A model generated the notes under the pieces. The model worked only from the letters and a program-made list of their open reading frames with translations. It had not been told where the DNA came from and made no database searches. A stretch of DNA of 62,309 bases from Salpingoeca rosetta (taxonomy: Eukaryota; Protista; Choanoflagellata), in assembly GCA_033442325.1 (NCBI GenBank), contig JAWQFM010000024.1:504185-566493 (forward strand), given 5' to 3'. Positions 2,786 to 48,688 of the stretch are shown one piece after another. A program made the position numbers and the translations under genes. The stretch's first letter is position 1, and the number at the start of each line of letters is the position of its first letter.

Positions 2786-5392
2786 CAACACAAACAACGC
2801 AACCACACACAACACAACACAAACAACACAAAACACACACGAAACACGAGACAACACAAACAACGCAACCACACACAACACAAAACACGACCACAACCAC
2901 AACCACGACCACAACACAACACAACACTCACAAAAGCACATCCGCACACAGACAAGAGCATGCAGGAGCCTGTGCGCACCAGCCATGGCGTATGGGGTGA
3001 GGCCTTCGCGGTTCTTGATGGTCAGTGATGCGCCTGAGGAGAGAAGCAAATCAATCAACTCTTCATTCCTGCGTGGAGCAAGCACCGCCCCATGCAACGC
3101 CGTGTTGCCCTGAATAATGCAATGCAACACATGACGATTGCAGAGAGTGTTCGTGTGTGTTTGGCGTGTGTTTGATGTCAAGCAGGATCATACGCATACG
3201 TTCACACACGTGCGGATATGGGCGCAGACGCAGACGCAGACGCAGACGCAGGCATGTACACACCCGCACCCACACACACACACACGCACAGACACACACC
3301 TTGGTGCTCTGCGCGTTGACGTTGGCCTCAGCATCCAACAGCACCTTCGCGCTCTCCAAATGCCCATTGCGCACGGCCTCATACAACGGCGTGGTGTGCA
3401 TGAGCGACACCGCATTCACATCTGCGCCCTGATCCAGCAACTCAAGCACGGTGTCCTCTCGTCCTTCGCCGACGTTGCTCAGCTCCTGAAATAACGCTTT
3501 TGTTGGCGCACTGCGTGTAACACGAGCAAGACCACAACAGAAACAAACATCGACATCGTGAGCGGAGACGTGGACAGCTCGCTTTGCAGCGACAGCGATG
3601 AATAACCAAACACACGAAAAGAATCATCGCACACACACACACTCACATACGCACGCACGAACACAACGCAACGCCACATACACACACACACACACCACGC
3701 ACACGCACACGCACCACGCACACGCACCACGCACACGCACACACCACGCACACGCACACACACATACAACACACCCACCTCATGCCTTCCTTGCGAGGTC
3801 CAATCTTCTTGTCAATGCGGTCCTTGCGTCGTTTCGCCAACTCCTGCAGCCGCTCCCGCTTGTCAGCCTCCGTCTCCTCATCACGACCATCACGGCCATC
3901 ACGACCAACACCAGTGCCATCGCGGTGACGGCTGCGACGCGGGGATGATGGCGCGCTTGCAAACAGCGCGTCGATATCTGATTGATGGGTTGAGCGGTGC
4001 TTCCGCGACTGGCGTTGGCGCTGCACACGATCATCATCACGGTCGCGGTCGCTATCATCATCATCACCGCCACTGCCGTCACCGCGCCTTCGCGGCCGCT
4101 GCCGCCGTTGTGTTCGTTCAGATGCAGACGAGGACAAGGCCACCGTGTTGGGCCTGCTGCTGCGATTCTTGGAGGCGGTGGTGGACCGGCCCTTGGTTCC
4201 GGTCAGAGATGACAGCGATGAAGGCGACGCTGCACGTGGATCGCGCGGGTCCTTTCTGTTCGCCGGCCGCCTTGTTGACGACAACGAGGACGATGATCGC
4301 GCCCTGTCCTTGTGCCTGTCCTTCCCCTCTTTGTCCTTGTCCTGTTTGTCTTTGTTCTTCTTCGACGCCCGGAAGGAGACGCCGCGCCGCAACTCAATGT
4401 CGTCAAGTGCAGACCCAAAGATGTCTTCGTCCTCCTTGGACAGCTTCAGCACGGACCCTGGTCGCGCTGGCTTCAGCTCCCGCAGCTTTCGCTTCTTTTC
4501 CTCCTCCTCCTCCTCATCCTCGTTGTCGTGTCCATCGCTGCTGGCATCGGCAGAGTCACCGCCCTTCCCCCGTCGTCTACGACCATGTCCACCCTTCCGT
4601 CCGCGTCGCCCCTGCTTGCTGCGCACGCGACCACCACGACCACCACCATCGCTCACATTGTCACCCGTCAGCGAGCTCGCATCATCGTCATCATCATCAT
4701 GATCATGATCGTCATCATGATCGTCAGCACTGTCGCCTTCGTCAGTCGACTCCAAGAGTGCGGCATAATCGTCACCAGCTCCGCTCCGCTGCGTGTGTAG
4801 TGCGCGCGTGCCGGGCCGCTGTCCGCGTCGCCCGAGAAGCGCATGTGCTGCTGGCCTGTACTTGCGGAGTGTGACGGTGACAATCACGCTCTCGCCGTCA
4901 TCGTCAAGCGACGCCTTTGTCACATCGCACATGCGCGGCTCTCCCAGCGCAGCCTGAGAAGCAACGACGGGTGTGTGTGTGTGTGTGTGTAAGTGTGTGT
5001 GTAAGTGTGTAAATGTGTGTGTGTGCTTGCGAAAGTGCGGTGTGCGCATGTGTTGGTGGACGACACAGCTCAAGCCAGTCGTTTGTGCGATAACCACGCA
5101 AGTGACCAGCAAAGCCATGTTGCAAACCACCCATGTCACGCCCACGGTCACGAGATGTAGAGTCCACACCGCTCACCTGGAAAGACGGTTGGTCTCGGCA
5201 GTATGCCTTGAGGTGGTGTGCAAGGTGCTCAATCTGCATGCGCCAGAACCCTTTGCCAGGGCTCACATCCCGCACACGATTGCCTGCAGGCAATGACATC
5301 GCGTGTGCAACCATGTCACCGTGTCAGTTGAGATGCAATGACGCCCAGGCACTGTCAGACACGACCTTCTGAGCCGCAAACGAACACACACG

Positions 5393-31219: not shown

Positions 31220-33623
31220 ATGGCGCTACGCCTGGCTCGTGCGGGTCTTTTCCTGCTCGCAGCAGCAGCGCTCTTCTTCATCAGCCCATTAGGTACAACC
31301 ACATCAAACACAAACACACACACACGCACACATACATGAACGCGTACACACGAGATTTGCTCGTTGTGGCGTTACCTGTTGGAAGGGTGTGTGGTTGATG
31401 TTGCATGTGACATCTTTCACGTACCGATCAAGTCTCGGCTCAGGGGCGCAGTAGCAACAACACTTCCACCAACAACACCAACACCCACAAGACCAAATGC
31501 CGTCAATCCCAAGCCACGCCAGCGGTTGCCATTTCTCACCGCTTGCTCTTGCTGCTCTCATTGCTTTCATCCTCCCCCCCCCAATATGTTGTGACAGGCG
31601 CAGAGGCAGCCTGCCCTTGCCAGAACGGCGGCACCTGTGTTGGTGACACATGCTCATGCGTGCCAGGGTTCTCTGGCGACTCGTGTGAGACGCTCGAGGA
31701 TTGCTACCTGGTACAAGCGCACCTGTACCAGCAGCTTGGAACGCTGGTGAACCCGTGCTTGAATGGCGGCGTGTGTCAGCCGTCAGGAGAGTGTTTGTGC
31801 CCCGTCACGGCATCGGGCTCCTTCTGCGAAAACATCGTCGATCCGTGCGCGGGCGATGCCAACCCGTGCCTGAACGGCGCAACCTGTGCTGTTGACAACG
31901 GCGCAGTCGTGTGCAACTGTGCGCCCGGCTTTGAAGGCAGCACGTGCAGCGAAGTTGTGCAGCCGTGCGTGCCAGATCCATGCCAGAACGGCGCCGCGTG
32001 CGTGCAGACGGGCCCAGAATCGTATATGTGTGAGTGCACCATTGGCTGGGGTGGCGACGACTGCTCTCTGGCCGTGGACCCTTGCACCTTTGACCCCTGC
32101 AACAACGGTGGCGAGTGCACTTCATCCGGTGCCGACTACTCATGCACGTGTGCCCCGGGCTTTGTCGGCCCAACCTGCGACATCGGTGCGTTGCTTGTTG
32201 TGTTGTGGTGGTTTGGTGTGCAACGTGTTCGTGTGATGTGATTGTGTGATGCACCTGCTGTGCCCGCGATTTTACCGAGAGGGTACGAGCGTTCGTGAGG
32301 GTGGGTATGCTGTGCACACACGACGAGCACCTGCACGAACTACACGGGTTGCATGGTTTGGTGTGCAAGGGGTTGGCTCTATGCTGCTTGAAGTGTACAT
32401 GTGGGTGCGTTGATTGTCTGTGCATCACCATCAACACCATCAACACGAGATCGATGCCCATGAACTTGACCGTTTCCATTTGTTGTTTGAACACACCCTC
32501 TGTATCTGTTCTGCATCGCTCTCAACTCATACAGAGTGCACGGATAGTGGTTGCGCCGAGTGCCTGACAACAGACCCGTCCGTGTGCACGCTGTGCCAGG
32601 CGCCACTGTATTTGCACGACAACGTGTGTCTTGACACGTGTCCCTCGGGCCTCGTCACTGATCCGTACTCGAGCGTTCCCAGCGACAGCACAGAGATCGG
32701 ACCACGTGTTTGCGGCGGTGAGCGACTCAGATGTGGAAGGGATTGGGTGTGTGTGTGTGTTGGAGCGGGGGTGGGAGAGACAAGGGGGAAGGCAAGAGTA
32801 CGAAACAGTGCATGCGCTGTCCAATACGTATGCATGTGCGTGTGCGTGTGCGTGTGCGTGTGCGTGTGCGTGTGCGTGTGCGTGTGCGTGTGCGTGTGCG
32901 TGTGCGTGTGCGTGTGCGTGTGCGTGTGCGTGTGCGTGTGCGTGTGCGTGTGCGTGTGCGTGTACGTGTGTGTGTGCGTGTGCGTGTACGTGTGTGTGTG
33001 TCGAAAACGAAGACCATTGCAACAGGCCTCACCCACTCGATTTCACATGACATCCATCACCGCTCACGCTGCCACCATTATCCACGACACCCATCATCAC
33101 CAACACCAAGAGTGGACTGGCGTGCCCAAGCTGGAGGGCGCGTTGTTTCACACGAGCGTCACGCCTGCGGAGGTGTGCCGTCGGCTCGGGCTGTCCTGGA
33201 GTGACGAGCTCTCGCTTGCCGCGCCCACAACCGGCCGGTCCACGGTGTGCAGCATCTGGTACCCAGGTGCAGAGCTGGTGGAGTTTTCGCCGTGCGACAG
33301 CGAGCCCCACCTGGCCAGCATCACCTGCTCCGCGCTGTGCGGGCTGAACTGCGACGTGTGCCAGGACTCGTCCACGTGTGACGTGTGCGAGGCTGGCTAC
33401 TTTGTCAGTGCTTCTGGTACCTGCGTGCCTTCCTCAGAGTGTGGCAGTGGCTTCTACGCCGACACGACCACGGGCAACTGCCAGCGTGAGTTCTAGTGTT
33501 GACAAAACGAGGGGACTGACAGTCTCGAACAGTATGCCTGACTTGTCATGACGATGGTCTTCACGCATGCAGACACACATGCGCACCCACATCACTCGCA
33601 ACCATGCACATAATGTGCGCAAT

Positions 33624-33679
<56 letters not shown>

Positions 33680-36600
33680 ACACACGCACACACACACACA
33701 CATACACACACGCGCGCGCGCGCGCAAAATGCACGCAATACACACATGCGCTTGATGCTGCTTGCTCGCCTTTCTTCCTCACCACTCCATGCCCCCATTC
33801 CCTTTCCCCCTCATTTACAGCCTGCCAGGAGTGCGCGAGTGGATCGTATGCCACCGCCACATGTACAGAGTTTGCCGACACCGTGTGCGAGGACTGGACT
33901 GTGTGCAGCGAAAACCAGATTGTGTTTATTGCGGGCTCGTCGACGCGTGACGTGGTGTGCCGCACATGCAGCACGTGCGGTGCCAACCAGTATGTGAGCC
34001 GTCGTTGCTTCGTGCAGACCGTCAACAATTTACCCGTGTTCCGTGACACCGCATGCAGCACATGCACGACCTGCGATGCCGGCGAGTTTGTGGAGCAGGC
34101 GTGCACCGCCACCACCGACACCGTCTGTGGCGTGTGCTCCACCTGCCCAACTGGGTTCTACGTCAGCACACCCTGCACGTCCGCCCAGGACACCGTGTGC
34201 AGTGCAATCACCGCCTGTGCCGCTGGGGAGTACATCAGCAAGGCAGCGACACCCAACGCCGACCAGCAGTGCTCCCCCATCACTGAATGTGTTGCTGGGG
34301 AGGAGTATCTTGCCACGCCGGCCACCGCCACCTCCGACAACGTGTGCCGCCCCATCACCGAGTGCGGCGCAAACCAATATGAGCTCCATGCTCCCACAGA
34401 GACAAGCGACCGTGTGTGCACGGCGTGCAGCACGTGCCCCACCAACGAGCACATCGTGTTGGCTTGCGGAGGCACGCAGGACACGCAGTGCAGTGGCTGC
34501 AGCACCTGCACGCCCGGCGAGACGTTCATCCAGCAGCCGTGCACCGTCTTCTCGGACACCGTGTGTGCACCGTGCAGCGAGTGCGCAGCTGGCACGTTCC
34601 TCGTCGCCACTTGCGCCGGCCCAGATGACACCGTGTGTGGACCGTGCACGCCTTGCTCCAGCACACAGTACCAGGTGGAGGCGTGCACCAGCACCCGCAA
34701 CACCCAGTGCGCTGCGCTGACGGTGTGCTCCTCGACAGAGTACGAGTCGGTCGCTGCAACGGCTACCACAGACCGCACGTGCGTGGCCGTGTCGACGTGC
34801 GGCACCAACGAGTACCAGAGCAAGGCGCCCACGACGACCACCGACCGTCAATGCAGCGCCGTGACCACGTGCACGGAAGACGAATTTGAGCGCTACCCGC
34901 CCTCGCGCGTCACGGACCGCGTGTGCGCCGCGCTGACCGTGTGCCACGCTGAGCTGCAATATGAGCTGGTGGCACCAACCACCACCTCCGACCGCGTGTG
35001 CCGTCGCCTGACCACGTGCAGCCTGGACGAGGGCACGTACGAGCTTTTCGCGCCCACGGCAACCACAGACCGCGTGTGTGCACCCGTGCGCGAGTGTGAG
35101 GAGGGCGCCGAGTATGAGGCCACCGCGCCCACGCCCACCTCCAACCGCGTGTGCCAGCCGCTCTCGCCATGCCCGGAGCAGCTGACATACGAGGCTGTTG
35201 CAGCAACCCCAACCTCGGACCGCACGTGCCTGGCGGACAAGTACTGCAGCTTCAGCGCCGAGCTGACCAACTTTGCTGGCGACGGCAGCGGCCGCGTCTT
35301 CGCCACATTCACCGACCCCACGGCCCACCTTGACCTGCAGATTGTGTCTGACGCCAAGGCGTGCGCAGACCAGTGCTTCCTGCGCAGCAGCTGCAAGGGG
35401 TTTGTTCTGGCACTGGAGACGGTGACGACGACAACGTCCGCGTCCACCGCACTCACCTGCACGCTGCTTTCGCGCCTGGGCGACGCCCACGGCGTGACAA
35501 CCGGCCTGGTGACGGCGTCCTATGCCCGCGTGGCCGTGCAGGAGTACGAGGTGCAGTCGCCGACGACCAGCACGCCACGGCAGTGTGCTGCCGTCACGCA
35601 GTGCAGCCCGGAGGTGGAGTTTGAGATTCTTGCGCCAACAGCGACAACAGACCGCGAGTGCAGCGCGCTGACGCAGTGCGAAGCCGCGGCGGAGTACGAG
35701 ACAGTGGCCCCAACAGCCACGTCCGACCGCGAATGTGTTGCGCTCAGCACGTGTAACGAGGAGCTGGAGTACGAGGCAACGCCGCCCACGGCCACCACAG
35801 ACCGCGTGTGCGAGCTGTTTACAAGCTGCCTTGCCACGGAATACGCGGTTGTGCTTGCGTCACCCACCAACGATCGCGTGTGCGAAGCGCTGACAACTTG
35901 CAACTTTGCCCAGCAGTACGAGACAGTGGCACCCACCTTCAGCAGCGACCGAGAGTGCACGGCCCTGAGCGTGTGCTCTGGTGCCGAGTACGAGCTGCAG
36001 CCGCCCTCTGTCACGCAGGACCGCGTGTGCGAGGCCGTGTCCATGTGCACGAGCACCGAATATGAGGCGCGTGCGCCCACGGAGAGCAGCGACCGCGTGT
36101 GTCTGGCGCTGACGGAGTGCCTGGCGGGCGTGCAGTTTGAGCTGCAGCCGCCAACGGCGACGACGGATCGCGTTTGCACCACATACACGGCGTGCCGCCC
36201 CCTGACAGAGTTTGAGTCTCGCGCGCCCACAACCACCACAGACCGCGTGTGCAGCCCTTTTACCGTGTGCGATCCCGCTGCCCAGTACCAGTCTGTGCCG
36301 GGCACGGCCACCTCCAACCGGGTGTGCACGGCGCTGACGCAGTGCGAGCTTGGCATCACCTTTGAGACGCAGGCGCCCACGCCCACCATGGATCGCGTGT
36401 GCTCTGCGTGCTCGACATGCGATGCTGGCGCGGGCGAGGTCATCACTGGGGAGTGCTCGCTCACCGCAGACACGGCGTGCATGGCGTGCCCGTGCCAAAA
36501 CGGCGTGCAGTGCACACAGCTCAACCCTGTGGGCTACAAGTGCGAGTGTCCAGCCGGCCTGAGCGGTGAGTTCTGTGAGATTAACGCGGACGACTGCGCC

Positions 36601-39600
36601 TCATCGCCGTGTCAGAACGGAGCAACCTGCGTTGACCTGATCAACGGGTACGAGTGCAACTGCTTCCCTGGCTGGAGCGGCGAGACATGCACGGTACTCG
36701 CAAACTGCAACGCATACCGCTTCGAGGTGCTTGCGCGCACGGGCCTGCGCATCAACCCGTGTGCACCGGGCACGTGCGACGCGGATGACACGTGCTCTTG
36801 CCCATCTGGCTTCACGGGCAGCTACTGCGAGGTGAACATTGACGACTGCGAGAGCCACGCATGCGAGAACGGCGGCACATGCGTCGACGGGGTCAACTCG
36901 TACACGTGCAGGTGTCCCGTTGGCACCTACGGTGACCTGTGTGAGTTCAACGAGGACGACTGCTTCGATGGCGCGTGCCAGAACGGCGGCACCTGTGTGG
37001 ACGGCATCAACTCTTACACGTGCGACTGCCCACCAGGGTTTGTCGGCGAGACGTGTACGGAGGAGACCATCGAATGCAGCCCAAACCCGTGCGAGAACGG
37101 CGGGACTTGCATCGAAGGGCAAGCCACCTTCACCTGCGACTGTCCGTCAGGGTTTGGTGGCCCAACGTGCGCAGACATCTGCCCACAGGACTGCGTGTCC
37201 TGCTCTTCCGCAGACGTGTGCACGATGTGCACCAACTACAAGTATCTTGATGCTGGTGAGTGCCGCGACTCGTGCGCGGCATCTTCATCGCTTGCGGACG
37301 TGTACGGTGCTGTTGAGTACAGGAGTGGCTCCTCGGCTGCCACTGCCCACGAGACGGGCCGGGTGTGCGGCGCGTGGACGGGCCAGCCCGTGCTGGACGG
37401 CTACCTCTTCCATCGCACGTGGACTGTAAATGCGCTGTGCGAGGCCATTGGTCTCGCACCACCGACAGACGCCCTGGTCGCAGCGACAGAGACCCTGATC
37501 AGCTACGACCGCATGGGCGTGTGTCGCATCTGGTACCCGAGCCAAGGCCTGGTCACCCTGGTACAGCAGCCGCCTTGCGACGACAGCGAGCCGTACGTGA
37601 GCGAGGTGACATGTAGCGCCCTGTGCGTGGACACGGGCTGCGGCGCGTGTGACCTCAGTGGTCGCTGCACGAGCTGCGTGTACCCGCAGCTGCTCAAGGA
37701 TGGCGCCTGTGTTTCAGAGAGCGAGTGCGGTGTTGGCTTCTTCGCCCACGTGGCTGAGGACGGCTCTGGCGTGTGTGAGGCGTGCACGGTGTGCGGCGCA
37801 GACGAGTACGAGACGACGCCCTGCAGCTTGGATGGCAATCGCGAGTGCGCTCCGCTCACGGCTTGCGACGCCTTTGGCGAGTTCTTCGTGCTGACGGCTG
37901 CCACGGCCACGACGGACCGCGTGTGCAAGGCGTGCACGGTCTGCGACAGCGACGCATTTGCCAGTGGCGGCTGCCAGGGCGAGCAGGACACGCTGTGCCA
38001 GCCCCTGACGCGCTGCTCCCAGGACCAGTACGAGGCCGTTGCTGCGACGCCAACGAGCGATCGCGTGTGCATGGACATCAGCAAGTGTGCAGCTGAGGCG
38101 GGCGAGTACGAGTTTGCGGCGCCAACGGCAACAACAGACCGCATTTGCTGTGCAGATGGCACGACGGGCCCGCAGTGCAGCGAGCCGTCCTCGGATTGCT
38201 GCATGAACGGTGGAACGTGCGTGCAGGATGCGCTTGGCACCGGGCGGGAGTGTGTGTGCATTCCCGGGTACGCCGGTGTCTCGTGCGAAGTTCTCCAGGA
38301 CTGTCTCATGGTGGTGGGCTACTTTGCGTCGGAGACAGGTTCGCGCCTGGATCCGTGCGAGAACGGCGGCATGTGTCAGTACGACGTGGCAGAGCAGCGC
38401 GGTGTGTGCCAGTGCCAACCCGGGTTTGCCGGCGACGCCTGCGAGGAGAGCGCATTCATGGCTGGTGACGTGATCCCTGGCTACGAGCTTGTGCACGTTG
38501 GTGGTAATGGTGGGCGTCGTTTCACCACCGCCTTTGACGCGGCCAGCACCATCCTGGTCCTGCACAACGTGCTTGAGGCCACCTGTGTGCTTGAGTGCAA
38601 CACGCAGGAGGCGTGCGAGGGCATTTTCTTCTGGCAGCGGTCGGCGACGGAGCTTCGCTGCTACCTCCTGAGCGACACTGGCTCGTCTGCTGGGGTCGTG
38701 ACCTCCACAGACTCGTTCAGCTACGCCAAGGTGCACACGACGACGACCACAACCACGACCACCACGACCACCACGACCACGACCACGACGACGACCACGA
38801 CGACGACCACGACGGACGCATTTGACTTTCCATTTTCAGACAATGGCTACGACGTTGTGTTTGCTGGGGTGCAGGGCACAAGCAGCGATGGGCCCCGCCG
38901 GTTTTCGACCGCCTTCCAGAGCCAATACGAGCTTGCGGTGCTGGACGTTGATGCGGCCATTGAGTGCCTGCAAGAGTGCGATGCACTGGATGCGTGCGCT
39001 GGTGTGTTCCTGAGGGAGGCGACAACGACCATGCGATGCCACCTGCTGTCAGACCTTGGCGCAGAAGCGGGCATTGCCACGTCCACGACGTCTCTTTCGC
39101 TGCGCAAGCTGCTGGACACAACCACAACCACGACGACGACGACGACAACAACGACGACAACAACGACAACAACGACAACCACCACGACGACGACGACCAC
39201 GGATGTGCTCGGGTTTGCGTTTGAGGACAACGGCTACGTTGTTGTGTTTGAAGGTGTGCAGGGCATGAGTGGTTCCCCGAGGCGCTTCAGCTCTGCATTT
39301 GTGCCCTCCTTGGAGTTGGCTGTGGTGAGCACAACACAGGCGCGCACATGCGTCAATCTGTGTGATGCTGATGACAGGTGTTTGGCTCTCTTCATCTTTG
39401 AGCGGTCGTCAGACTACCAGTGCCGGTTGCTTGCTGAGTTTGGGACCGAAACGGGCACTGCCACCTCCACAACGTCGCTGTCTCTCGTGAAGCTGCCAAA
39501 GACGACCACCACCACATCTACGACAACTACAACAACCACAACGACCACAACTACAACATCAACCACGACGACCACGAGCAGCACCACGACGACAACAACA

Positions 39601-42600
39601 GCGACGACAACGACCACGAGCAGCACCACAGCCATCTTTGAGTATCCATTCGATGAGAGCGAGTATGAGGTTGTGTTCAGAGGTGTGTCTGCCTTCAACG
39701 CCGGTGCTCCCGTGCGCTTCTCGACTGCATTCGACGCACGGTTTGAGCTGCAGGTCATTTCCGTGGTGAGTGTTGCAGAGTGCCTGCAGGCATGCCACGA
39801 CAGCAACACCTGCCTCGGCGTGTTTTTGCGAGAGACAACAACCACGTTGCGGTGTCATCTGCTTTCCAACTTGGGCACGCCTGAAGGTCTCCCAACGTCC
39901 ACCGCATCCCTCTCCCTGAGAAAGCTCATGCTAACAACATCAACAACGACGACGACGACCACTTCAACGACGACTGAAGAAGCAATGTCATCTACAACCA
40001 CGACGACCACGACGACCACTTCAACCACGACGACCACGACGACCACTTCAACAACGACGACAACGACAACCACTTCAACCACGACGACCACGACGACCAC
40101 TTCAACAACGACGACAACGACGACAACCGCGACCACGACCACTACCACGACCACAACCACTACTAGCACCACAACCACAACCACAACCACCACCACGACT
40201 ACAACGACCACTACTCGCACCACAACGACTACCACTACAACCATGATTAGCACGACAACAACACATGTGCTGCAGTTTGATACGACAGGTTATGATGTGG
40301 TCTTCGTCGGCACACAAGGAGGAGTGTCTTCTCCTCGCCGATTCAGCACCGCATTTGACTCGACATTCAGGCTCCCACTGACAGCCCCAGTGACGACGGG
40401 GGCAGAGTGCCTGCAGGCATGTGAGGCGGAGGCTGCATGCGTTGGTGCATTCATCTGGACACCTGATGTCAACATTCGCTGCTATCTTTTGACAGACCTG
40501 GGCACAGAGGCGGGCATTGCCACCTCCACCGCCTCCGTCTCCCTGCGGAAACTCGCCGCTTCCACGACAACGACAACAACATCCACAACGACCACCACGA
40601 CAGCAACGACAACGACGACGACCACCACAGCAACGACAACGAGCACAACAACAACGAGCACAACAACAACGAGCACAACCACAACTACTTCAACCACAAC
40701 TACTTCAACCACAACTACTTCAACCACAACTACTTCAACCACAACTACTTCAACCACAACTACTTCAACCACAACTACTTCAACCACAACTACTTCAACC
40801 ACAACTACTTCAACCACAACTACTTCAACCACAACTACTTCAACCACAACTACTTCAACCACTTTAACGACTACAACCACCAGCACCAGCACTACCAGCA
40901 CCAGCACTACCAGCACCAGCACTACCAGCACCACAACAACCAGCACCACAACAACAACCAGCACCACAACAACCAGCACAACCACAACCAGCACAACCAC
41001 AACCAGCACCACAACAACCAGCACAACCACAACCACCACAACCACAACCACAACAACAACCACCACGACGACCACCACCACGACCACCACAACCACAACC
41101 ACAACCACAACTACTACAACAACCACAGCAACCATCTCCATTGATGTGCCAAACACCGCACCTGATTTCAGCGAGACAGAGGCCACAACAACGCTGACCA
41201 TCGATGCATCCTATGACACAGTAGACCTTGCCCAGCTGCAGTCTGATGTGCTTGAGAGCTTGGCCACCACCGGTGTCAGCTCAGATGACGTGGCCTTTGT
41301 TCACTTCTACCCAGGCAGCATCAACATCCTTGTTGGCTTCCGCACGCAGGCCGCATACACAACGCTGACGGCGGCGCTGGCCACCGGTCCTCTTCCCGTC
41401 GGCAACGCCACTGTCTCCCTGCTCACGACAAGCATGCAGCCTTACGTGTCGTCGAATGACGCTTTTGTCGCATACAAGACCAGCACGAGCGAGCCAGGCT
41501 TCAACCTTGTCGCCCTTGACAACCTCAAGCCCGGCCTCAAGGTTGCGGTCACCAGCGCAGTGGGGCCGCTCAGCGTGGACATGGAAGTGACAACACCGCG
41601 CCTATCACCAACCACATTCAAGGCGGTTGTCCTGCCGGCGTCCGGCAATGTCTGGTTCAACGACCCCACCGTCTCTGTCTTTATTCGCTTTGAGGATGAG
41701 CGCGGCAGCGCACTTGTGGCGGAGGGGTCAACAGCCATTGTGACCGTGTCGCCACCAGCATCCTTGGGAGCAGCAGCATCACCCCTCACCACGGTGTGTG
41801 TGTCAAAGCTGGACGAGCAAGAGGGTGCGGTGTGCACGGCAACGGTCACCCTGCCCTCGTCATGGTTCTCCTACGAGCAAGATGAGGATGTGAGAGTGAC
41901 GGCCGCGCTGCTGAGCGACATCAGCAGCACCTCCACTGTGATTGCCGACCTGACACTCAAGCAACAGCCCTCCGTGGCGCTGGCCACTGGCTATGGCGTC
42001 GTGTGCCGGTTCCCGCAGGGCAGCGTGTTCTCCGAGAGCGGGTTTGACATTGACTGCTTTGGGCGTGCGCGGGATGGCGTTGCCCTCACGCAGTTCCAGT
42101 TGCAGCTGACGCCGTCTGCCGCCACCATCTCCTTTGGACAGGTCACCAGCACGGACATGTGGGGTGTTACCGCCCGCACAGTGAGTGGCAAGCTCGTCGT
42201 GACCGGCTCCCGCGTGAGCAGCACCGACACGGGCAGCACGGGCGATGAGTTTATGCACCTGTTCTCTGTGCGCGCCCGTGCCGGTACGACCACGTCCTCC
42301 TTCTCCGTGCGGGTCACCGTGCGCGTGCAGGAGATGCTGTCGCTCGCGGGCCGCGTTGTGCCGGTCAACTCCCTTGCCCATGTCACAGACGCGAACGTGA
42401 CGCCCACCCAGCGATCTGCGACAACAACGGTGGTTGCCGTCGACACTGCTGGCGTGCTGGCGTGGATCGAGTCGCCCTTGCTGGTGAACACGGCGCCACT
42501 GGCTCCAACGCCCGACGCCCGCGTCTCCCGAAGCATGACGGTGCTTGCCATTAACACGGATGGCACCGTCCTTGCCTCCGACAGCCACTTCTGCGCCGGC

Positions 42601-45600
42601 GCCGGCGTGACCCAGGCAACGGGGTGCACGGAGGTGAGCTTTGGATCCACAGACCCAACTGACGGCCGAATTGAGGTGACGGTGCTCCTGGGCACCGCAC
42701 AGGACACTGTGGCGCTCAACGTCATGCGCCTGGATTCCGTGCAGCTGGATGTGTCCAACACGCAGCTGCACTTTGTGACCACGGCCGCAGCGTTGGGCAA
42801 CTGCACGGGCACCTTCCAGCAGGCGCGCGTGGGCATTCGCGCCGTGTTTGTCGCCGGCGTGCGCAGCGTGATTGTGGACGTGACGCACATGGCGCCCTGG
42901 CTTCTGCAAATGTCCAACGAGGACACGGTGCAGTTGGTGGGTGCACAGGCCGGTGAGGGCGAGTACGATGTTGACCTGCATCTCGCCCTGACGGGCGGCC
43001 GCGCCGTGCTTCAGGGCATGGCCCCCGGCACGGTACAGCTGCAACTCGTGTCCCCTTCCGTGCCAGGCCTGGTTTGGGACAGCGAGGACGTGACTGTGCT
43101 GGGGTCCTCCGGACACGTCGCCACACACGTGCGCACGCTGTTGGCAGTTGACGTGCAAGTGGGCGCAGCCGCACCCTCCCTGACGGCGTTTGGCAGCAAC
43201 GGCCCCGACGTGTCAGTGGGCGTGAGCAGCAGCGTCAAGGCGTCGTTCTCCGAGCTGCTGCAGCCTGGGGTCGCCGTCTCTGTAATTGTTGATGCACAGG
43301 GCGGCGAGATCCTGGTGCTGTCCTCCGATGCAGGCCCGGTGCCAAACATTGCGCTGAACCGCGAGGCGAGCAACGCAGACGTGATGGACGTCGACGCAGT
43401 CATGCTCGCAGATGGCAGCGTGGTCATGGAGACCACTTCTGTCATTGGCGTTGTCAACACCAACCAACAAGGCCAGGATGTGCATGTGCGCACAACGGCG
43501 GCCATGTGTGGTGGAGCTGCAGTGCTGGAGGGAAGGGAGACGTTCCCGGTCCAGTTCCTCGACGTGGTCAGCGTGCAGTACAACGTGAGCACCAACGTCA
43601 TTGCCATGGCTGGCTCTCCAGCCGTTGCCGCTGGTGTGAGCAGCCGCGTGCAGCTGCGCATTGTGGCCACACGTGAGGATGGCAGCACCCGCGATGTGAC
43701 GCTTGATCCACGCGTCATCATTGACACGCAGACCTTTGGGCTCGGCGCCCTCGTCGTGGGCAGCTCCACGCAGGACGGCCGTCTGACCATCGAGGCCACG
43801 CGCGTGGTGCAGGGTGCTGCTGTTGTGGTGTCCTTTGAAGGCTTCAACCAGACCCTCCCCATCACCGTTGTTGAGGCTGTGCGCCTGGACCTGTCCGCGC
43901 ATCCGTACCCGCCGTATCCCGGTTCAGAATCTGTCTCCGCCAGCCCGCTGGAGGCCATTGGCAGCACGGGGCGGTTCCAGGAGGCGCAGCTGCTGGCGTT
44001 GCTGTCTCTCTCCAACGGGGACCAGATTGATGTGACGGCGCACCCCGACATTGAGTTTGACATCTCGGTTCCCGAGCTGTACGTGGCCGAGACGCTGCTC
44101 CTCGCCACGGGAGAGACGCTGGGCAGCGTCACAGCCTCGTTTGCAGCTGGCGGCATTGTGTCCAACGTACTGCAGATGGAGGTGACGAGCACGCAGCGAC
44201 AGGTGGCGCAGGTTGTCGTGGAGGCACCGGCCGCTCTGTCTGGGCTCATGGGCGATGTGTACGCCGGGGCCGTGCAGGTGACGCTGGTGCTGGACGACGG
44301 CACGCGCCTGCAGCACGGCTATCTCTTCAACGCAACCACGCAGCAGCCCAACTTTCCCGGCATGATCACGTTCTCCTCCAGCCAGGAGGAAGCCGTGGTT
44401 GTGGATGCGGCTACGGGCGCACTCACTATTGCAGGCAACACGAAGCGCGGCCCTGCCGTGATTACAGCCACCAGCGGGGGCGTGCAAGGGACAGCGAGCC
44501 TGCGCATCAACCTCGACGTGGCTGATCTGGACATGGACATGGGCAACCTGGCTGCCGCTGACGAGCCCATCCCGACACAGAGCACGAGCCAGGCGTTCTC
44601 CGTCCCGCTGGTGCTGCGTCTGCCAACCACGGTGGAATCTGTGGATGCACTGCAGTTTCAGCTCTCCTTTGACCCAGCTGTGTTGTCGGTGCTGTACGTG
44701 ACTGCCGGTGACGGCTGGTCCAACAGCCGCCTGTTTGTTGACATTGATGCGAGCGCGGGCGTGATTCGCTCAGGCGGCATCTTCCCGCTGCTCAAGGGCG
44801 GTGCAGACGACCCCACGCTCGTGGAGATTGCCGTCATCACCTTTGAGGTGAAGAGCACGGCGCCCGCAGGATACACGGATCTGGCGGGCCGGTTTGACGT
44901 GTTCAGCAGCATGGGCTCCACCATCGTTGCTGCCGGCACTCCATTTGTTGCCGGTGATGTCAGCGTGCTCATTCAGAGCAGCAGCAGCAGCAGCAGTAGC
45001 AGCGCCGCTGCCGCCGCTACAGCCGACAACGGGCGTCGTCGTCGTCGTAACCTGCTATCGCTTGAGCCCTTTGATGTCACCAACCAAATTGTGTTTGGCG
45101 ATGAGGGCAAGGAGGGTGTTGTCGATGTCGAAGCTGACGGTGTGCGTGGCGCAGCTCCGCGCAAGCGCCGCGATGTGCAGGTGAACGGGGACGTGAACCT
45201 TGATGGCGTGTTTGATTTGGCGGACGTGTTGTTCCTGTACGGGTACCTCGCTGGCTATAACACGGACGTGACCCCCGAGCAGCTGCTTGAGATGGACATC
45301 AACGGCGACAGCCAGATCAACACGGCCGATTTCCTCTACAGCCAAAAGGTGGTGGCCAACGAGTACCGCTTCCTGGAGGTGTCCAGGGTTGCCTCTGTCT
45401 CGCTCGCCACGGACTGCCGGTTTGTTGTGGAGGTGACGACGCGCGACGCTTCGGGAGCACCAGAGAGCGAGGACACCATTGTGTTTGTTGATCTGGAGAG
45501 CCCATCAGAGGGCTTCCACCAGCGCATGGTTGCGAGCGAGTTCCTGTTTGGCACGCCGGTCGAGGCCAAGCCCGCACCCTTCAACGGCACCATCGTGCGC

Positions 45601-48310
45601 GCAGCAGCCACGGGCAACGGCACGCATACGGTGGCATTTGACTCGAGCATTGTTGCCGGCGCAAAGGTTGGCGTGAGCTTCTTCGTGGCCACACTGGACA
45701 GCAACGGCAGCCCAAGCGCAGACCGCATTACGCCGCTGCTCACGGGCCCCTCGCTTGCCCCTTACAGCTACGTCGGCTATGCCGGTGTGGGCATCCCGAT
45801 TCAAGGCGATGTGCTCGATGTGCAGTTTTCCGATTACAACGCAAAGGTGGCGCGCACGGTGGCGCAGACGACGTTTGAGTGCATCCCAGACCCGTGCATT
45901 GCGCTGCCGTGCGAGAACGGGGCCACGTGCACGCAGGACATGCGCGATTACACGTGTGAGTGCGCAGACGGCTACACGGGCGACAGGTGCGAGGTTGACA
46001 TTGACGAATGCGACGGCCACGCGTGCCAGAACGGCGCCACGTGTGTTGATGAGGTTGGCACGTATTCGTGCAGGTGTGCTGCTGGCTTCACGGGTCCGCT
46101 GTGCGAGGTGAACGTTGACGATTGCGCCGGCAACCCTTGCCTGAACGGGGCGTCGTGCGTCGACCTCATTGACGGCTTCTCGTGCACGTGCGCGCTCGGG
46201 TTTGAGGGCGAGCGGTGTGAGCAGAACATCGACGACTGCGCGAGCGACCCGTGCCTGAACGGCGGCACGTGTGTTGACGCGCTGGCGTCGTACTCGTGCG
46301 AATGCCCCGACGGATTTGAGGGCGACCGCTGTGAGGTGAACGTGGACGAGTGCGCAGACAGCCCCTGCGTGAACGGCGACTGCCGGGACGGAAACAACGG
46401 CTTTGTGTGTGAGTGTGACGCAGGGTTTACGGGTGAGCTGTGCGACGTCGACATTGACGAGTGTGCGAGCCAGCCCTGCCAAAACAACGCCACCTGTGTC
46501 GATCACATCAACGCCTACACTTGCACGTGCCTGCCTGGGTTTTCTGGCGACGCATGTGAAGTCGGTGCGTTTCGTGTATGCGCGCGTGTGCGTACATGTG
46601 TTTGAATGCGGAATGTGTATGGGTGTGATTGTGTATGGGATTGTGTATGGGTGTGATTGTGTATGGGTGTGATTGTGTATGGGTGCGTGTGTGCGTGTGT
46701 CGTAATTTGCGTGTGTACATTCATCTGTGTGTGTGTGCGTGTAAGATGTGCACGTGGTTCTGCTCCCATGGTAACACCCCCTCACCACTCACTCACCACA
46801 GCCTCTCACCACAACCCCTCACCGTGTCCTTACCTCTCACTCACCACAACCTCTCACCATGTCCTCAACCCTCGTCGCACCCCTGCCGTGCTTCGTCGAC
46901 ACAGACTTCTGCGAGCAGCCCGAGAATGCGTGTGAGAACGGCGGCGTGTGCGTGCGCGAAGAGGAGCGCTGCGAGTGCGTTGACGGGTGGTCTGGTCGCC
47001 TGTGCACGATTCCCCCGCAGGAAATTGTGACCGTGACGCCACCGCCGGCATCCAAGTCGGGCAGCGGCAACTCTGTTGCGCAGCCCGCCATCTTTGCGGT
47101 GGTGGGAGTGATTGGGGTGCTGGCGTGTGTGGTGCTGGTGGTTGTTGTGCGACGGTACCGCGCATCGAGCTACGACACGGCGCTGGACAAGAGCACGCTC
47201 GACTGGGAGGGCATCGACGACGTGTACGACGATAGTCGCCATGCAGGCCGCAACACCTACGCGCAGAGCCCCATCGTGCCCCTTGACAGCGAGTACGAGA
47301 ACGTGCCTGCAGAGTACAGGCAGGATTTCTCCGACTCATCGGTGATGCAGTCGAGGCTTGGCGCTGAGCTGGACACTATTGCCAGCCCCGTGAGCCTGAA
47401 GCAGCAGCAGGCCGCAGACAGACAGCCCGCGACGAGTGGCGAGATTATCCGCTCGCTGCAGGGGCAGCTGGAGGGCGCCGACGAGGCGTTCCAGGCGGTA
47501 CCGCGCATCAAGCCGACGGCGACGTTTGAGACGGCCAAATCGGAGGAGAACCGCCCGCGCAACCGCTACAGCGACGTGCTGCCGTATGACGACACGCGCG
47601 TGAAGCTGTACAGCTCGGCAGAGACTGACTACATCAACGGCAACCACGTGTCGCTGCAGGCCGGGCGCCGGAACTACTGGTACGTGGCGACGCAGGGCCC
47701 CGTGAAGGGCACGCTGGGCGACTTTTGGCGCATGGTGTGGGAGCAGGGCTCTGAGATGATTGTGATGGTGGCGGCGGAGGTTGAGAACGGGCGGACCAAG
47801 TGCGAGCGGTACTGGCCGCGGGAGCAAGGTGACTACGACGCCATCCAGTACGGCGACTTTCGCGTGACGCTGCTGGGCGAGGTGGCCAACGAGGCATACG
47901 CCCTGCGCGGGCTGCGGGTGAAGAACATGATCACGGGGGAGAAGCGCTCGATCCGCCAGCTGCAGTACACGGCGTGGCCGGACAAGAGCGTCCCAGACGA
48001 CTCCAACCAGTTTCTCAAGTTTGTGGACGAGGTGGCGGTGACGCGCGACCGCCTGCTCAACGGCAACACGGCGCAGCCCGCTTGGCCGACGATTGTGCAC
48101 TGCAGCGCCGGTGTTGGGCGGTCTGGCGTCCTGGTGCTGGTTGAAGTTGCGCTGTCGCTGGCGGAGCAAGGGCTCCTGCCCCGCCTTTCCACAGTCTTGG
48201 AGGAGATGCGTGAGCAGCGCATGCTGCTGGTGCAGACGTTCCCCCAGTTCCAGTTCTGCCACAGGGCGATTATTGCTCACCTGCAGCAGCAACTGCAGCT
48301 GGAGGCGTAA
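31220..48310 (+). CDS. Giant receptor-type protein tyrosine phosphatase (about 5122 aa): SP, EGF, furin-like/TNFR-like Cys repeats, PAN-like modules with poly-Thr, SEA-like, TMEM132-like, cohesin, dockerin, EGF, TM, PTP
   Basis: Six exons 31220-31292, 31598-32185, 32535-32717, 33111-33485, 33821-46564 and 46905-48310 total 15369 nt; all introns are GT-AG and phase 1. Signal peptide [28 protein letters not shown]. About 20 EGF repeats (CQNGGTC..C.C..GF.G..C). [23 protein letters not shown] followed by RRYR. PTP motifs are intact: [50 protein letters not shown]. Confidence 0.93.
33821..36480 (+). repeat. Coding array of ~24-aa Cys-rich repeats (T.C...EYE..APT.T.DRVC), interrupted by one PAN-like module
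   Basis: Roughly 30+ units are visible in the translation. A further short block lies at about 37780-38150. Confidence 0.85.
38481..40555 (+). repeat. Five tandem ~85-aa PAN/Apple-like modules separated by poly-Thr linkers
   Basis: The signature Y.VVF.G..RRFSTAF...C...C....C.G.F.....C.LL..LG...G..TST.S.S..K recurs at about 38481, 38848, 39235, 39664 and 40291. Confidence 0.8.
40561..41133 (+). repeat. Mucin-like Thr/Ser stalk, including a 15-nt tandem repeat (acaactacttcaacc, TTTST)
   Basis: About 190 codons are nearly all Thr/Ser. A perfect 15-mer is repeated about 12 times at about 40680-40860. Confidence 0.9.
44530..45375 (+). other. Cohesin-like domain, RRRRR/RKRR linker and dockerin-like domain within the receptor PTP
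   Basis: Cohesin pattern [24 protein letters not shown]...[10 protein letters not shown]. Dockerin twin Ca-loops [23 protein letters not shown] and [16 protein letters not shown]. Basic clusters lie at 45034-45048 and 45160-45171. Confidence 0.8.
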
Positions 48311-48688
48311 TTGCTTCAATTTGGAGGCGTGTGTGTGTACGTGTACATGTCACTATTTCGACAGGCATGCGTGCACGTGAGTGGGCAATGCGGAGTACAT
48401 CATTTCTTTGTCCAATGTGCGAAACCCTGTGTGTTTGTGCTTGAGTGCGTGTCAATGCACTCTCTGTTGTTCACGTCTTACAACTTGTGTCTCTCATCCT
48501 GTGCTGACATGTGCGCAGGAGCGGGTTTGTTGTTGATTCATTGAGGTGGTGGTGCAAGTGAATAAACAAGAGTTTACCACAACACCAGGAAGCGTGCGCC
48601 CCTGATGGCGCTCGTCATGCTACACAGACACAGACACACAGACACACACACACACACACACACACAGACACACACACACACGCACACG

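Follow-up and report, generated by a model that had tools for sequence, protein, structure and literature searches.

Receptor tyrosine phosphatases of the LAR family and of type IIB are cut by furin into E and P subunits that remain non-covalently associated. Notch at its S1 site, adhesion G protein-coupled receptors (GPCRs) in their GAIN domain and mucins in their SEA domain are likewise cut within a folded juxtamembrane module, the parts of which are held non-covalently and can be separated by force; GAIN and SEA are self-cleaving, whereas Notch receives one cut within a single domain. Cohesin-dockerin bonds are, to our knowledge, among the strongest protein-protein bonds known, and they are known almost only from bacterial enzyme complexes. 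Here, we describe a gene for a giant receptor tyrosine phosphatase of the choanoflagellate Salpingoeca rosetta in which a cohesin and a dockerin are joined by a linker with two basic, cleavage-type sites. The gene is located in a stretch of 62,309 nucleotides (NCBI GenBank assembly GCA_033442325.1, contig JAWQFM010000024.1, positions 504,185 to 566,493 of the forward strand), referred to below as the window, and positions are counted within it unless another contig is named. An earlier note on this DNA had proposed a cleave-and-latch system in a receptor phosphatase. Its parts are present, but with 21 such units genome-wide it is not a phosphatase-specific device, and the finding should be framed as a genome-wide, conserved cassette composed of a cohesin, a putative excisable linker, a dockerin and a beta-sandwich termed the X domain.

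The closest described systems each share part of this design. Cellulosomal type I cohesin-dockerin pairs (C. thermocellum; PDB 1ohz, 2ccl, 4fl4) have the same two folds and the same duplicated F-hand Ca2+ loops, but here both modules belong to one eukaryotic polypeptide and are always adjacent, with a cleavage-type linker between them and the dockerin packed on a beta-sandwich. A cellulosome, in which the several cohesins of a scaffoldin recruit dockerin-bearing glycoside hydrolases in trans, was considered and rejected as the identity of the system, as every cohesin here has its one dockerin partner in cis and the neighbouring domains are EGF, TNFR, cadherin, Kunitz and protein tyrosine phosphatase (PTP) domains, not glycoside hydrolases. 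Prokaryotic, non-cellulosomal proteins with both domains have them in the same order in one chain; their linker, however, is very short and non-dibasic and they are not giant receptors. The LAR and type IIB phosphatases share an R-x-K/R-R site in the ectodomain near the membrane, as well as a proposed two-subunit receptor and ectodomain shedding, whereas FN3/juxtamembrane structure holds the subunits of the animal receptors, and in the cassette a dedicated cohesin-dockerin pair would do so after two cuts that would remove a peptide. The folds of the Notch, GAIN and SEA modules are unrelated to those of the cassette, in which a cut would fall in a disordered tether between separate binding modules. 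From the likeness to Notch S1 drawn by the earlier note, the cut-and-hold concept can be retained, but a single cut is less likely than excision of a peptide, since there are normally two sites. In this respect proinsulin is comparable: its C-peptide is a connecting peptide with two flanking dibasic sites that acts as a tether during folding and is excised by kexin-family enzymes. The insulin chains are held by disulfides, whereas the hold in the cassette would be a Ca2+-dependent protein-protein interface. Cohesin domains are on record in choanoflagellate and sponge cadherins (coherins, lefftyrins and hedglings) and in the TMEM132 family, and dockerin is reported as undetectable in vertebrates (PMC6030884). 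The study deals with cohesin only; neither a dockerin partner nor a linker with dibasic sites is described in it. No description of a cohesin-linker-dockerin cassette was found in the literature searched, although an earlier mention may exist.

Translation of 44530-45375 gives exactly the order that the earlier note had read: a cohesin-like domain, a Ser/Ala linker, RRRRR, RKRR and a dockerin with two Ca2+ loops. Both folds are supported by Pfam, by sequence profiles and by structural matches. The cohesin scores 28.4 bits against PF00963 (Pfam cut-off 24.1), and its AlphaFold2 model, with a predicted local distance difference test score (pLDDT) mostly above 80, superimposes on the C. thermocellum type I cohesin 4fl4_L with Z 15.3 and a root-mean-square deviation (rmsd) of 2.0 Å over 138 residues (VIA-align). 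The top ~30 structural matches to this model are cohesins, with pilin and adhesin beta-sandwiches ranking lower, and the cohesin family profile matches solved cohesins by sequence (e.g. 2vn5_A at 2.4e-5). The dockerin scores 28.9 bits against PF00404 (cut-off 22.9) and contains three helices in the model and two Ca2+ loops of the D-x-N-x-D type, 12 residues each and followed by a helix, with D or N at loop positions 1, 3, 5, 9 and 12. In the alignment of 23 units (A1), positions 1 and 12 are invariant in both loops. In a Foldseek-independent search of 48,161 representative chains with the dockerin-X model, the seven best matches are all dockerins, led by 2ccl_B (Z 11.8, rmsd 1.1 Å, 62/62 residues). 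By sequence, the dockerin profile matches solved dockerins at 4e-10 to 3e-7, followed by calmodulins at ~1e-4. Neither domain is unusual for its family, cohesin or type I dockerin. The X domain is present behind every dockerin in the alignment and belongs to the cassette. Its structural matches are generic only (Ig/FN3/macroglobulin-like, Z 7-8), and in the model of dockerin plus X (pLDDT 91.3, predicted template modelling score (pTM) 0.88) it is predicted to pack rigidly on the dockerin.

The linker of the window's unit runs from a poly-Ser/Ala stretch over the first basic site and an acidic spacer to the second basic site. In the 455-residue model of the whole unit, pLDDT drops below 50 only at unit residues 163-221, which correspond to the linker; as it is predicted to be disordered, it should be accessible. 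Both sites are located in this low-confidence segment, with ectodomain modules on either side and the membrane span further downstream, as would be expected of exposed convertase sites. RRRRR and RKRR are the only R-x-[KR]-R motifs within the 4333-residue frame. Dibasic motifs elsewhere in the window's protein are as frequent as its composition predicts (7 observed, ~6 expected), which excludes a depletion outside the linker, and enrichment is therefore claimed for the linker only. An intron inside the linker was ruled out by RNA reads, which cover it at a depth of ~35x with no splice joint within.

Conservation of the basic sites between cohesin and dockerin, which the earlier note had made a test of its reading, holds in paralogues and in distant relatives. 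Every readable linker among the 21 genome cassettes carries basic cleavage-type motifs. In 18 of these 21 units, or 17 by a second count of the first site, at least four Arg directly follow the last cohesin strand and an R-x-R-R motif lies shortly before the dockerin; the second site varies as RVRR, RARR, RHRR, RGRR, RTRR, RMRR and others, and in one unit with a short linker (L028) a single merged run of eight Arg is found. Within the alignment, site 1 falls in one column block in 22/23 units, and the majority consensus at the two sites is RRR and RxRR. R-x-[KR]-R occurs 33 times in the 1164 linker residues of these 23 units compared to 9 times in 41,407 residues elsewhere (2.8 versus 0.022 per 100 residues), an enrichment of ~130-fold. 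When 36 units were compared with random 51-residue stretches from the same proteins, at least one dibasic run was present in 35/36 units (8% of random stretches), at least two dibasic runs in 27/36 (0.8%) and at least two strict furin motifs in 21/36 (0 of 20,000). The linker otherwise varies, with a length of 17-112 residues and no conserved sequence, and the alignment suggests that the basic motifs survived while the linker around them changed. Arg codons are mixed between units; the conservation is therefore at the protein level, despite the five identical CGT codons of site 1 in the window.

The genome scan covered 55.4 Mb on 68 contigs. The profile of the cohesin part identified 21 places and that of the dockerin part 23, two of which are weak and isolated. 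All 21 cohesins have a dockerin downstream of them on the same strand and no orphan cohesin was found; the gap between the two is 100-300 bases in 20 of the 21 units and ~760 bases, across a masked stretch, in the remaining one. The open frames that contain cassettes are giant, reaching 7568 codons, and some contain two or three; the domains encoded near them include cadherin, Kunitz, TNFR-type, EGF, PTP and TMEM132-type Ig domains; one cassette-bearing gene has both cadherin repeats and a TMEM132-type Ig domain. Two cassettes are located ~234 kb beyond the window. The cassette is a generic module of many giant surface proteins (cadherin-type, TNFR/EGF-type and at least two phosphatases) and is not specific to the receptor of the window. 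The genome's own GPS (9 matches) and 7tm_2 (13 matches) receptors are encoded at other loci, none of them near the 21 cassettes.

Several individual loci deserve mention. On C23, a second phosphatase domain is encoded ~10 kb downstream of a cassette on the same strand (G000:C23:650116-650784 and C23:660694-661644), and this locus is probably a second receptor phosphatase with the joint. Units L004 (G000:C5:1864871-1868326) and L005 (G000:C12:49545-52988) encode near-identical protein on different contigs, reflecting either a recent duplication or an assembly duplicate. L020 (G000:C24:800300-802050) has a masked or undetermined stretch (X) within the cohesin-dockerin linker, beside poly-Ser and poly-Gln coding repeats. 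On C29, a copia-type retroelement frame (integrase, SH3-like domain, RVT_2) lies ~5 kb downstream of the cassette (L031:4956-7577, G000:C29), and a frame downstream of this unit encodes hydrophobic segments but is not matched by Pfam. The two dockerin-profile matches that are weak and isolated (E value 8.5e-5), which have no cohesin, are located at G000:C4:205507-205686 and C18:328619-328798; they may be EF-hand-like loops, and the one on C4 lies ~6 kb upstream of a tandem phosphatase gene.

Distant relatives were collected by an exhaustive search of 1.84 billion representatives. At about 25-30% identity they keep the basic sites, as RRRR/RxRR or as KR. Cadherin-type giants are among them, and one cassette-bearing protein is assigned by its source to the calcareous sponge Sycon ciliatum. 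In another (P0090), the same cassette precedes EGF repeats, a membrane span and a phosphatase, and the phosphatase end is 44% identical to that of the window. P0090 and a further relative with EGF repeats, P0112, are labelled by their sources as bacterial metagenome-assembled genomes (Rhodobacteraceae and Myxococcales). P0090 is almost certainly a wrongly binned eukaryotic contig, and P0112, with its non-basic linker, may be a misbinned eukaryotic contig as well. Two word-index homology searches, with the giant protein including region 3634-4088 and with the 23-unit alignment, returned nothing, close relatives included; the taxonomic range therefore rests on the search of representatives and on the source names of ten matches. 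Prokaryotic relatives in which cohesin and dockerin are adjacent have a very short linker without dibasic sites (P0107), and Atlas clusters contain proteins of about 200-230 residues that bear both domains. Such prokaryotic tandem proteins are a possible ancestor of the cassette.

A cut in the linker would require a suitable protease, and the genome contains at least two loci (C1 and C9) that encode a subtilase domain and, behind it, a proprotein-convertase P domain; one of these loci continues into furin-like Cys-rich repeats. Two kexin-like genes have been described in the choanoflagellate Monosiga (bioRxiv 10.1101/802215). With respect to binding, the AlphaFold2 model of the whole unit (455 residues, window:44503-45867) has a mean pLDDT of 80.4 and a pTM of 0.72. 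This model points to a non-covalent interface between the unit's own cohesin and its own dockerin-X, because only the disordered linker joins the two and domains left unplaced could not reach such a pTM. When cohesin (residues 1-162) and dockerin (224-292) were modelled as separate chains with two Ca2+ ions, the interaction prediction score from aligned errors (ipSAE) was 0.48, 0.49 and 0.49, in the weak band, compared to 0.01 for the best control, with a partner pLDDT of at least 82 and contacts that agree by at least 95%. The mark of this test, which cannot tell which family member binds, is reached by 51/78 solved complexes and 2/108 mismatched pairs. The binding of the isolated domains that the earlier note had expected thus has a predicted but weak counterpart (0.49 versus 0.01), and none of the three in-silico checks, of the folds, of the conservation of the sites and of binding, spoke against the idea of that note.

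From the domain identities, the disorder of the linker, the conservation of its sites, the strict pairing in cis, the presence of convertases and an expressed, spliced transcript (see below), we lean, with only modest confidence, towards a joint that is cleaved and then held, in which a convertase excises the connecting peptide and the cohesin-dockerin pair keeps the fragments together. The precursor would fold in the endoplasmic reticulum with the dockerin on its own cohesin, the tether ensuring 1:1 pairing in cis. Late in the secretory pathway, a kexin/furin-family convertase would then cut behind both RRRRR and RKRR and remove the connecting peptide; since a linker normally has a site at either end, such an excision is likely, rather than a single cut as at Notch S1. 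The distal ectodomain (at least 3815 residues in the giant exon) would from then on be attached solely by the Ca2+-dependent cohesin-dockerin bond to a membrane stub that comprises the dockerin, the X domain, seven EGF repeats, the membrane span and the phosphatase. The resulting joint would have a defined breaking force and would depend on Ca2+.

A number of points weigh against this reading. Cleavage and cis binding are steps that we infer, as is any influence that dissociation would have on signalling by the phosphatase. Among the units, L024 has site 2 only, L029 (with two RR pairs) and several distant units have only RR or KR, and P0112 has a linker of 17 residues without a basic site. 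The units share ancestry, hence the motif counts are not independent events, and site 1 in the window consists of five CGT codons beside an AGC repeat, which in isolation could be the result of repeat slippage. The whole-unit interface was read from the pTM score and not from contacts in the model. The separate-chain score of 0.49 is a weak one, and the predictor may have memorized solved complexes of cohesin with dockerin; scores of 0.60 or below are reached by just 5/78 solved complexes but by all 4 passing mismatches.

The alternative that survives best, although we consider it unlikely, accepts that the linker is cut but not that the pair is held in cis: the C-terminal end of the cohesin and the N-terminal end of the dockerin, once freed by the cut, would find partners in trans among the other cassette proteins, or the ectodomain would simply be shed. 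Pairing in trans would result in a cellulosome-like extracellular network or in an exchange of ectodomains. With 21 cassettes in many giant surface proteins, several of which have two or three, potential partners are numerous; bacterial cohesin-dockerin systems are established to act in trans, and the binding test is blind to the identity of the partner. A strict 1:1 adjacency without orphans, however, is the expectation for a self-contained pair. Folding would moreover precede convertase cleavage, so that the local concentration of the tethered partner should be far higher than that of any other, and the whole-unit model is read as setting the unit's own cohesin against its own dockerin-X.

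Somewhat less likely still is a linker that stays uncut. The pair would then act as a clasp within one molecule, with the linker stored as hidden extra length until force or low Ca2+ opens it, and the basic runs would serve another role, such as the binding of sulfated matrix polysaccharides. Units with short linkers that lack strict furin motifs, and P0112 with no basic motif at all, would fit such a clasp, and the prokaryotic tandems with non-basic short linkers (P0107 and the Atlas clusters) demonstrate that an uncleaved tandem exists in nature. Against it, the conserved feature is a motif, [KR]-R or R-x-R-R, at either edge of the linker and not net positive charge, as the spacer in the window is acidic; the distant units that are low in Arg use KR, the classic kexin site; and the genome encodes convertases. 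Finally, it is very improbable that the basic runs arose by chance or composition, through triplet-repeat slippage in a low-complexity linker between functionless relic domains, for although the CGT run of the window adjoins an AGC repeat, the motifs occupy the same two positions in 35/36 units at ~25% identity with mixed Arg codons, the background motif rate is 130-fold lower, the Ca2+-binding residues are invariant and both domain models are confident.

The gene that carries the cassette in the window was delineated with Pfam, sequence motifs and stranded RNA-seq from two runs (Table 1). Its giant exon encodes TNFR-type Cys-rich repeats, EGF repeats, Thr-rich mucin-like stretches, the cassette and six EGF repeats, with ~1000 residues that have no Pfam match. 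RNA-seq depth is 12-110x and unbroken over 43000-46564 and reaches 50-270x over the last exon. The intron between the two exons is the sole splice joint within 43000-48400 and leaves the reading frame intact (...CEV-D-FCEQ...). This coverage and the splice joint place cohesin, linker, dockerin and phosphatase on one mRNA. The EGF repeats, membrane span and intact PTP that had been placed downstream of the dockerin were recovered by Pfam, motifs, the membrane span and spliced reads. The phosphatase is of the classical receptor type, as HCxxGxxR, the WPD loop and the Q loop are intact and the domain lies behind a single membrane span on the shared transcript.

Table 1. Features of the receptor phosphatase gene in the window, with the evidence for each.
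Feature	Position	Strand	Evidence or details
Giant open frame	33604-46605	+	4333 codons; includes the region 44530-45375
Giant exon of the receptor gene	33604..46564	+	Open frame, Pfam, RNA-seq
Cohesin, nine-stranded beta-sandwich	44521..44982	+	Pfam PF00963, fold match
Connecting linker of 61 residues, predicted to be disordered: poly-Ser/Ala, then the two basic sites with an acidic spacer between them	44989..45171	+	pLDDT, RNA
Basic site 1, RRRRR then N (convertase-type R-x-R-R)	45034..45048	+	Sequence, alignment
Basic site 2, RKRR then D, five residues N-terminal of the first dockerin Ca2+ loop	45160..45171	+	Sequence, alignment
Type I dockerin, two F-hand Ca2+ loops	45172..45378	+	Pfam PF00404, fold match
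X domain, conserved beta-sandwich predicted to pack on the dockerin	45370..45858	+	Alignment, model
Six EGF repeats, cassette-to-membrane stretch	45859..46564	+	Six stretches matched by Pfam EGF (4.7e-47); also EGF_CA
GT..AG intron of 340 bases with abundant GT microsatellite	46565..46904	+	Spliced RNA reads (79 and 42), one spliced contig
Last exon: one EGF repeat, membrane span, juxtamembrane region, tyrosine phosphatase, stop codon	46905..48310	+	Pfam, motifs, RNA
Membrane span	47087-47149	+	Hydrophobic segment
Tyrosine phosphatase domain	47549-48274; catalytic motif from 48098	+	Pfam Y_phosphatase, E value 2.6e-73

The gene continues upstream of the giant exon. The apparent ATG of the giant frame is located inside a CA microsatellite (MHTHTHT...) and EGF and Cys-rich coding frames are found upstream, so that the 5' end would lie beyond this exon. 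The distal ectodomain, first estimated at ~4200 residues, comprises at least 3815 residues in the giant exon alone, and more would be encoded further upstream. The EGF repeats and furin-like Cys-rich modules encoded by the frames at 31543-33496 are similar to sections within the giant exon, and these frames are probably earlier exons of the receptor gene. CA/GT microsatellites at 33604-33700, 32800-33000 and 46590-46760 fill introns and the apparent start of the frame, and reads from other loci accumulate over the intron repeat at 46620-46800 on the opposite strand. At ~38700-41600 (residues ~1700-2650), five copies of a Cys-containing module of ~100 residues with a weak PAN_4 match are separated by long mucin-like runs of poly-Thr/Ser. 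The RNA (two 2026 runs and one contig set) differs from the assembly at 44145 (A>G), 45558 (G>T) and 45744 (G>A), the first two in all reads and the third in 46/48 and 76/78 reads; all three are third codon positions and look like strain differences.

As to what the joint is for, we tentatively suggest that the cassette may be a pre-animal module for cleaved, non-covalently held receptors, an equivalent of GAIN, SEA and the Notch negative regulatory region (NRR) built from prokaryote-type parts, and that pulling off the distal ectodomain may act as a switch on phosphatase activity or clustering. For protein engineering, the cassette might also provide a eukaryotic, genetically encoded module of the 'cut-and-hold' type. 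If the proposal is true, the giant adhesion proteins of choanoflagellates and sponges would be chains of fragments connected by Ca2+-dependent, force-rated joints, and a protein with two or three cassettes would consist of three or four pieces. How receptors that are cut and yet held (Notch, adhesion GPCRs, mucins and LAR-type phosphatases) originated is a standing question in the origins of animal signalling. The closest relatives of animals and an early-branching animal, the sponge, would then have met the same need with parts of bacterial type that they had borrowed, and the genome studied here would use this solution at no fewer than 21 places.

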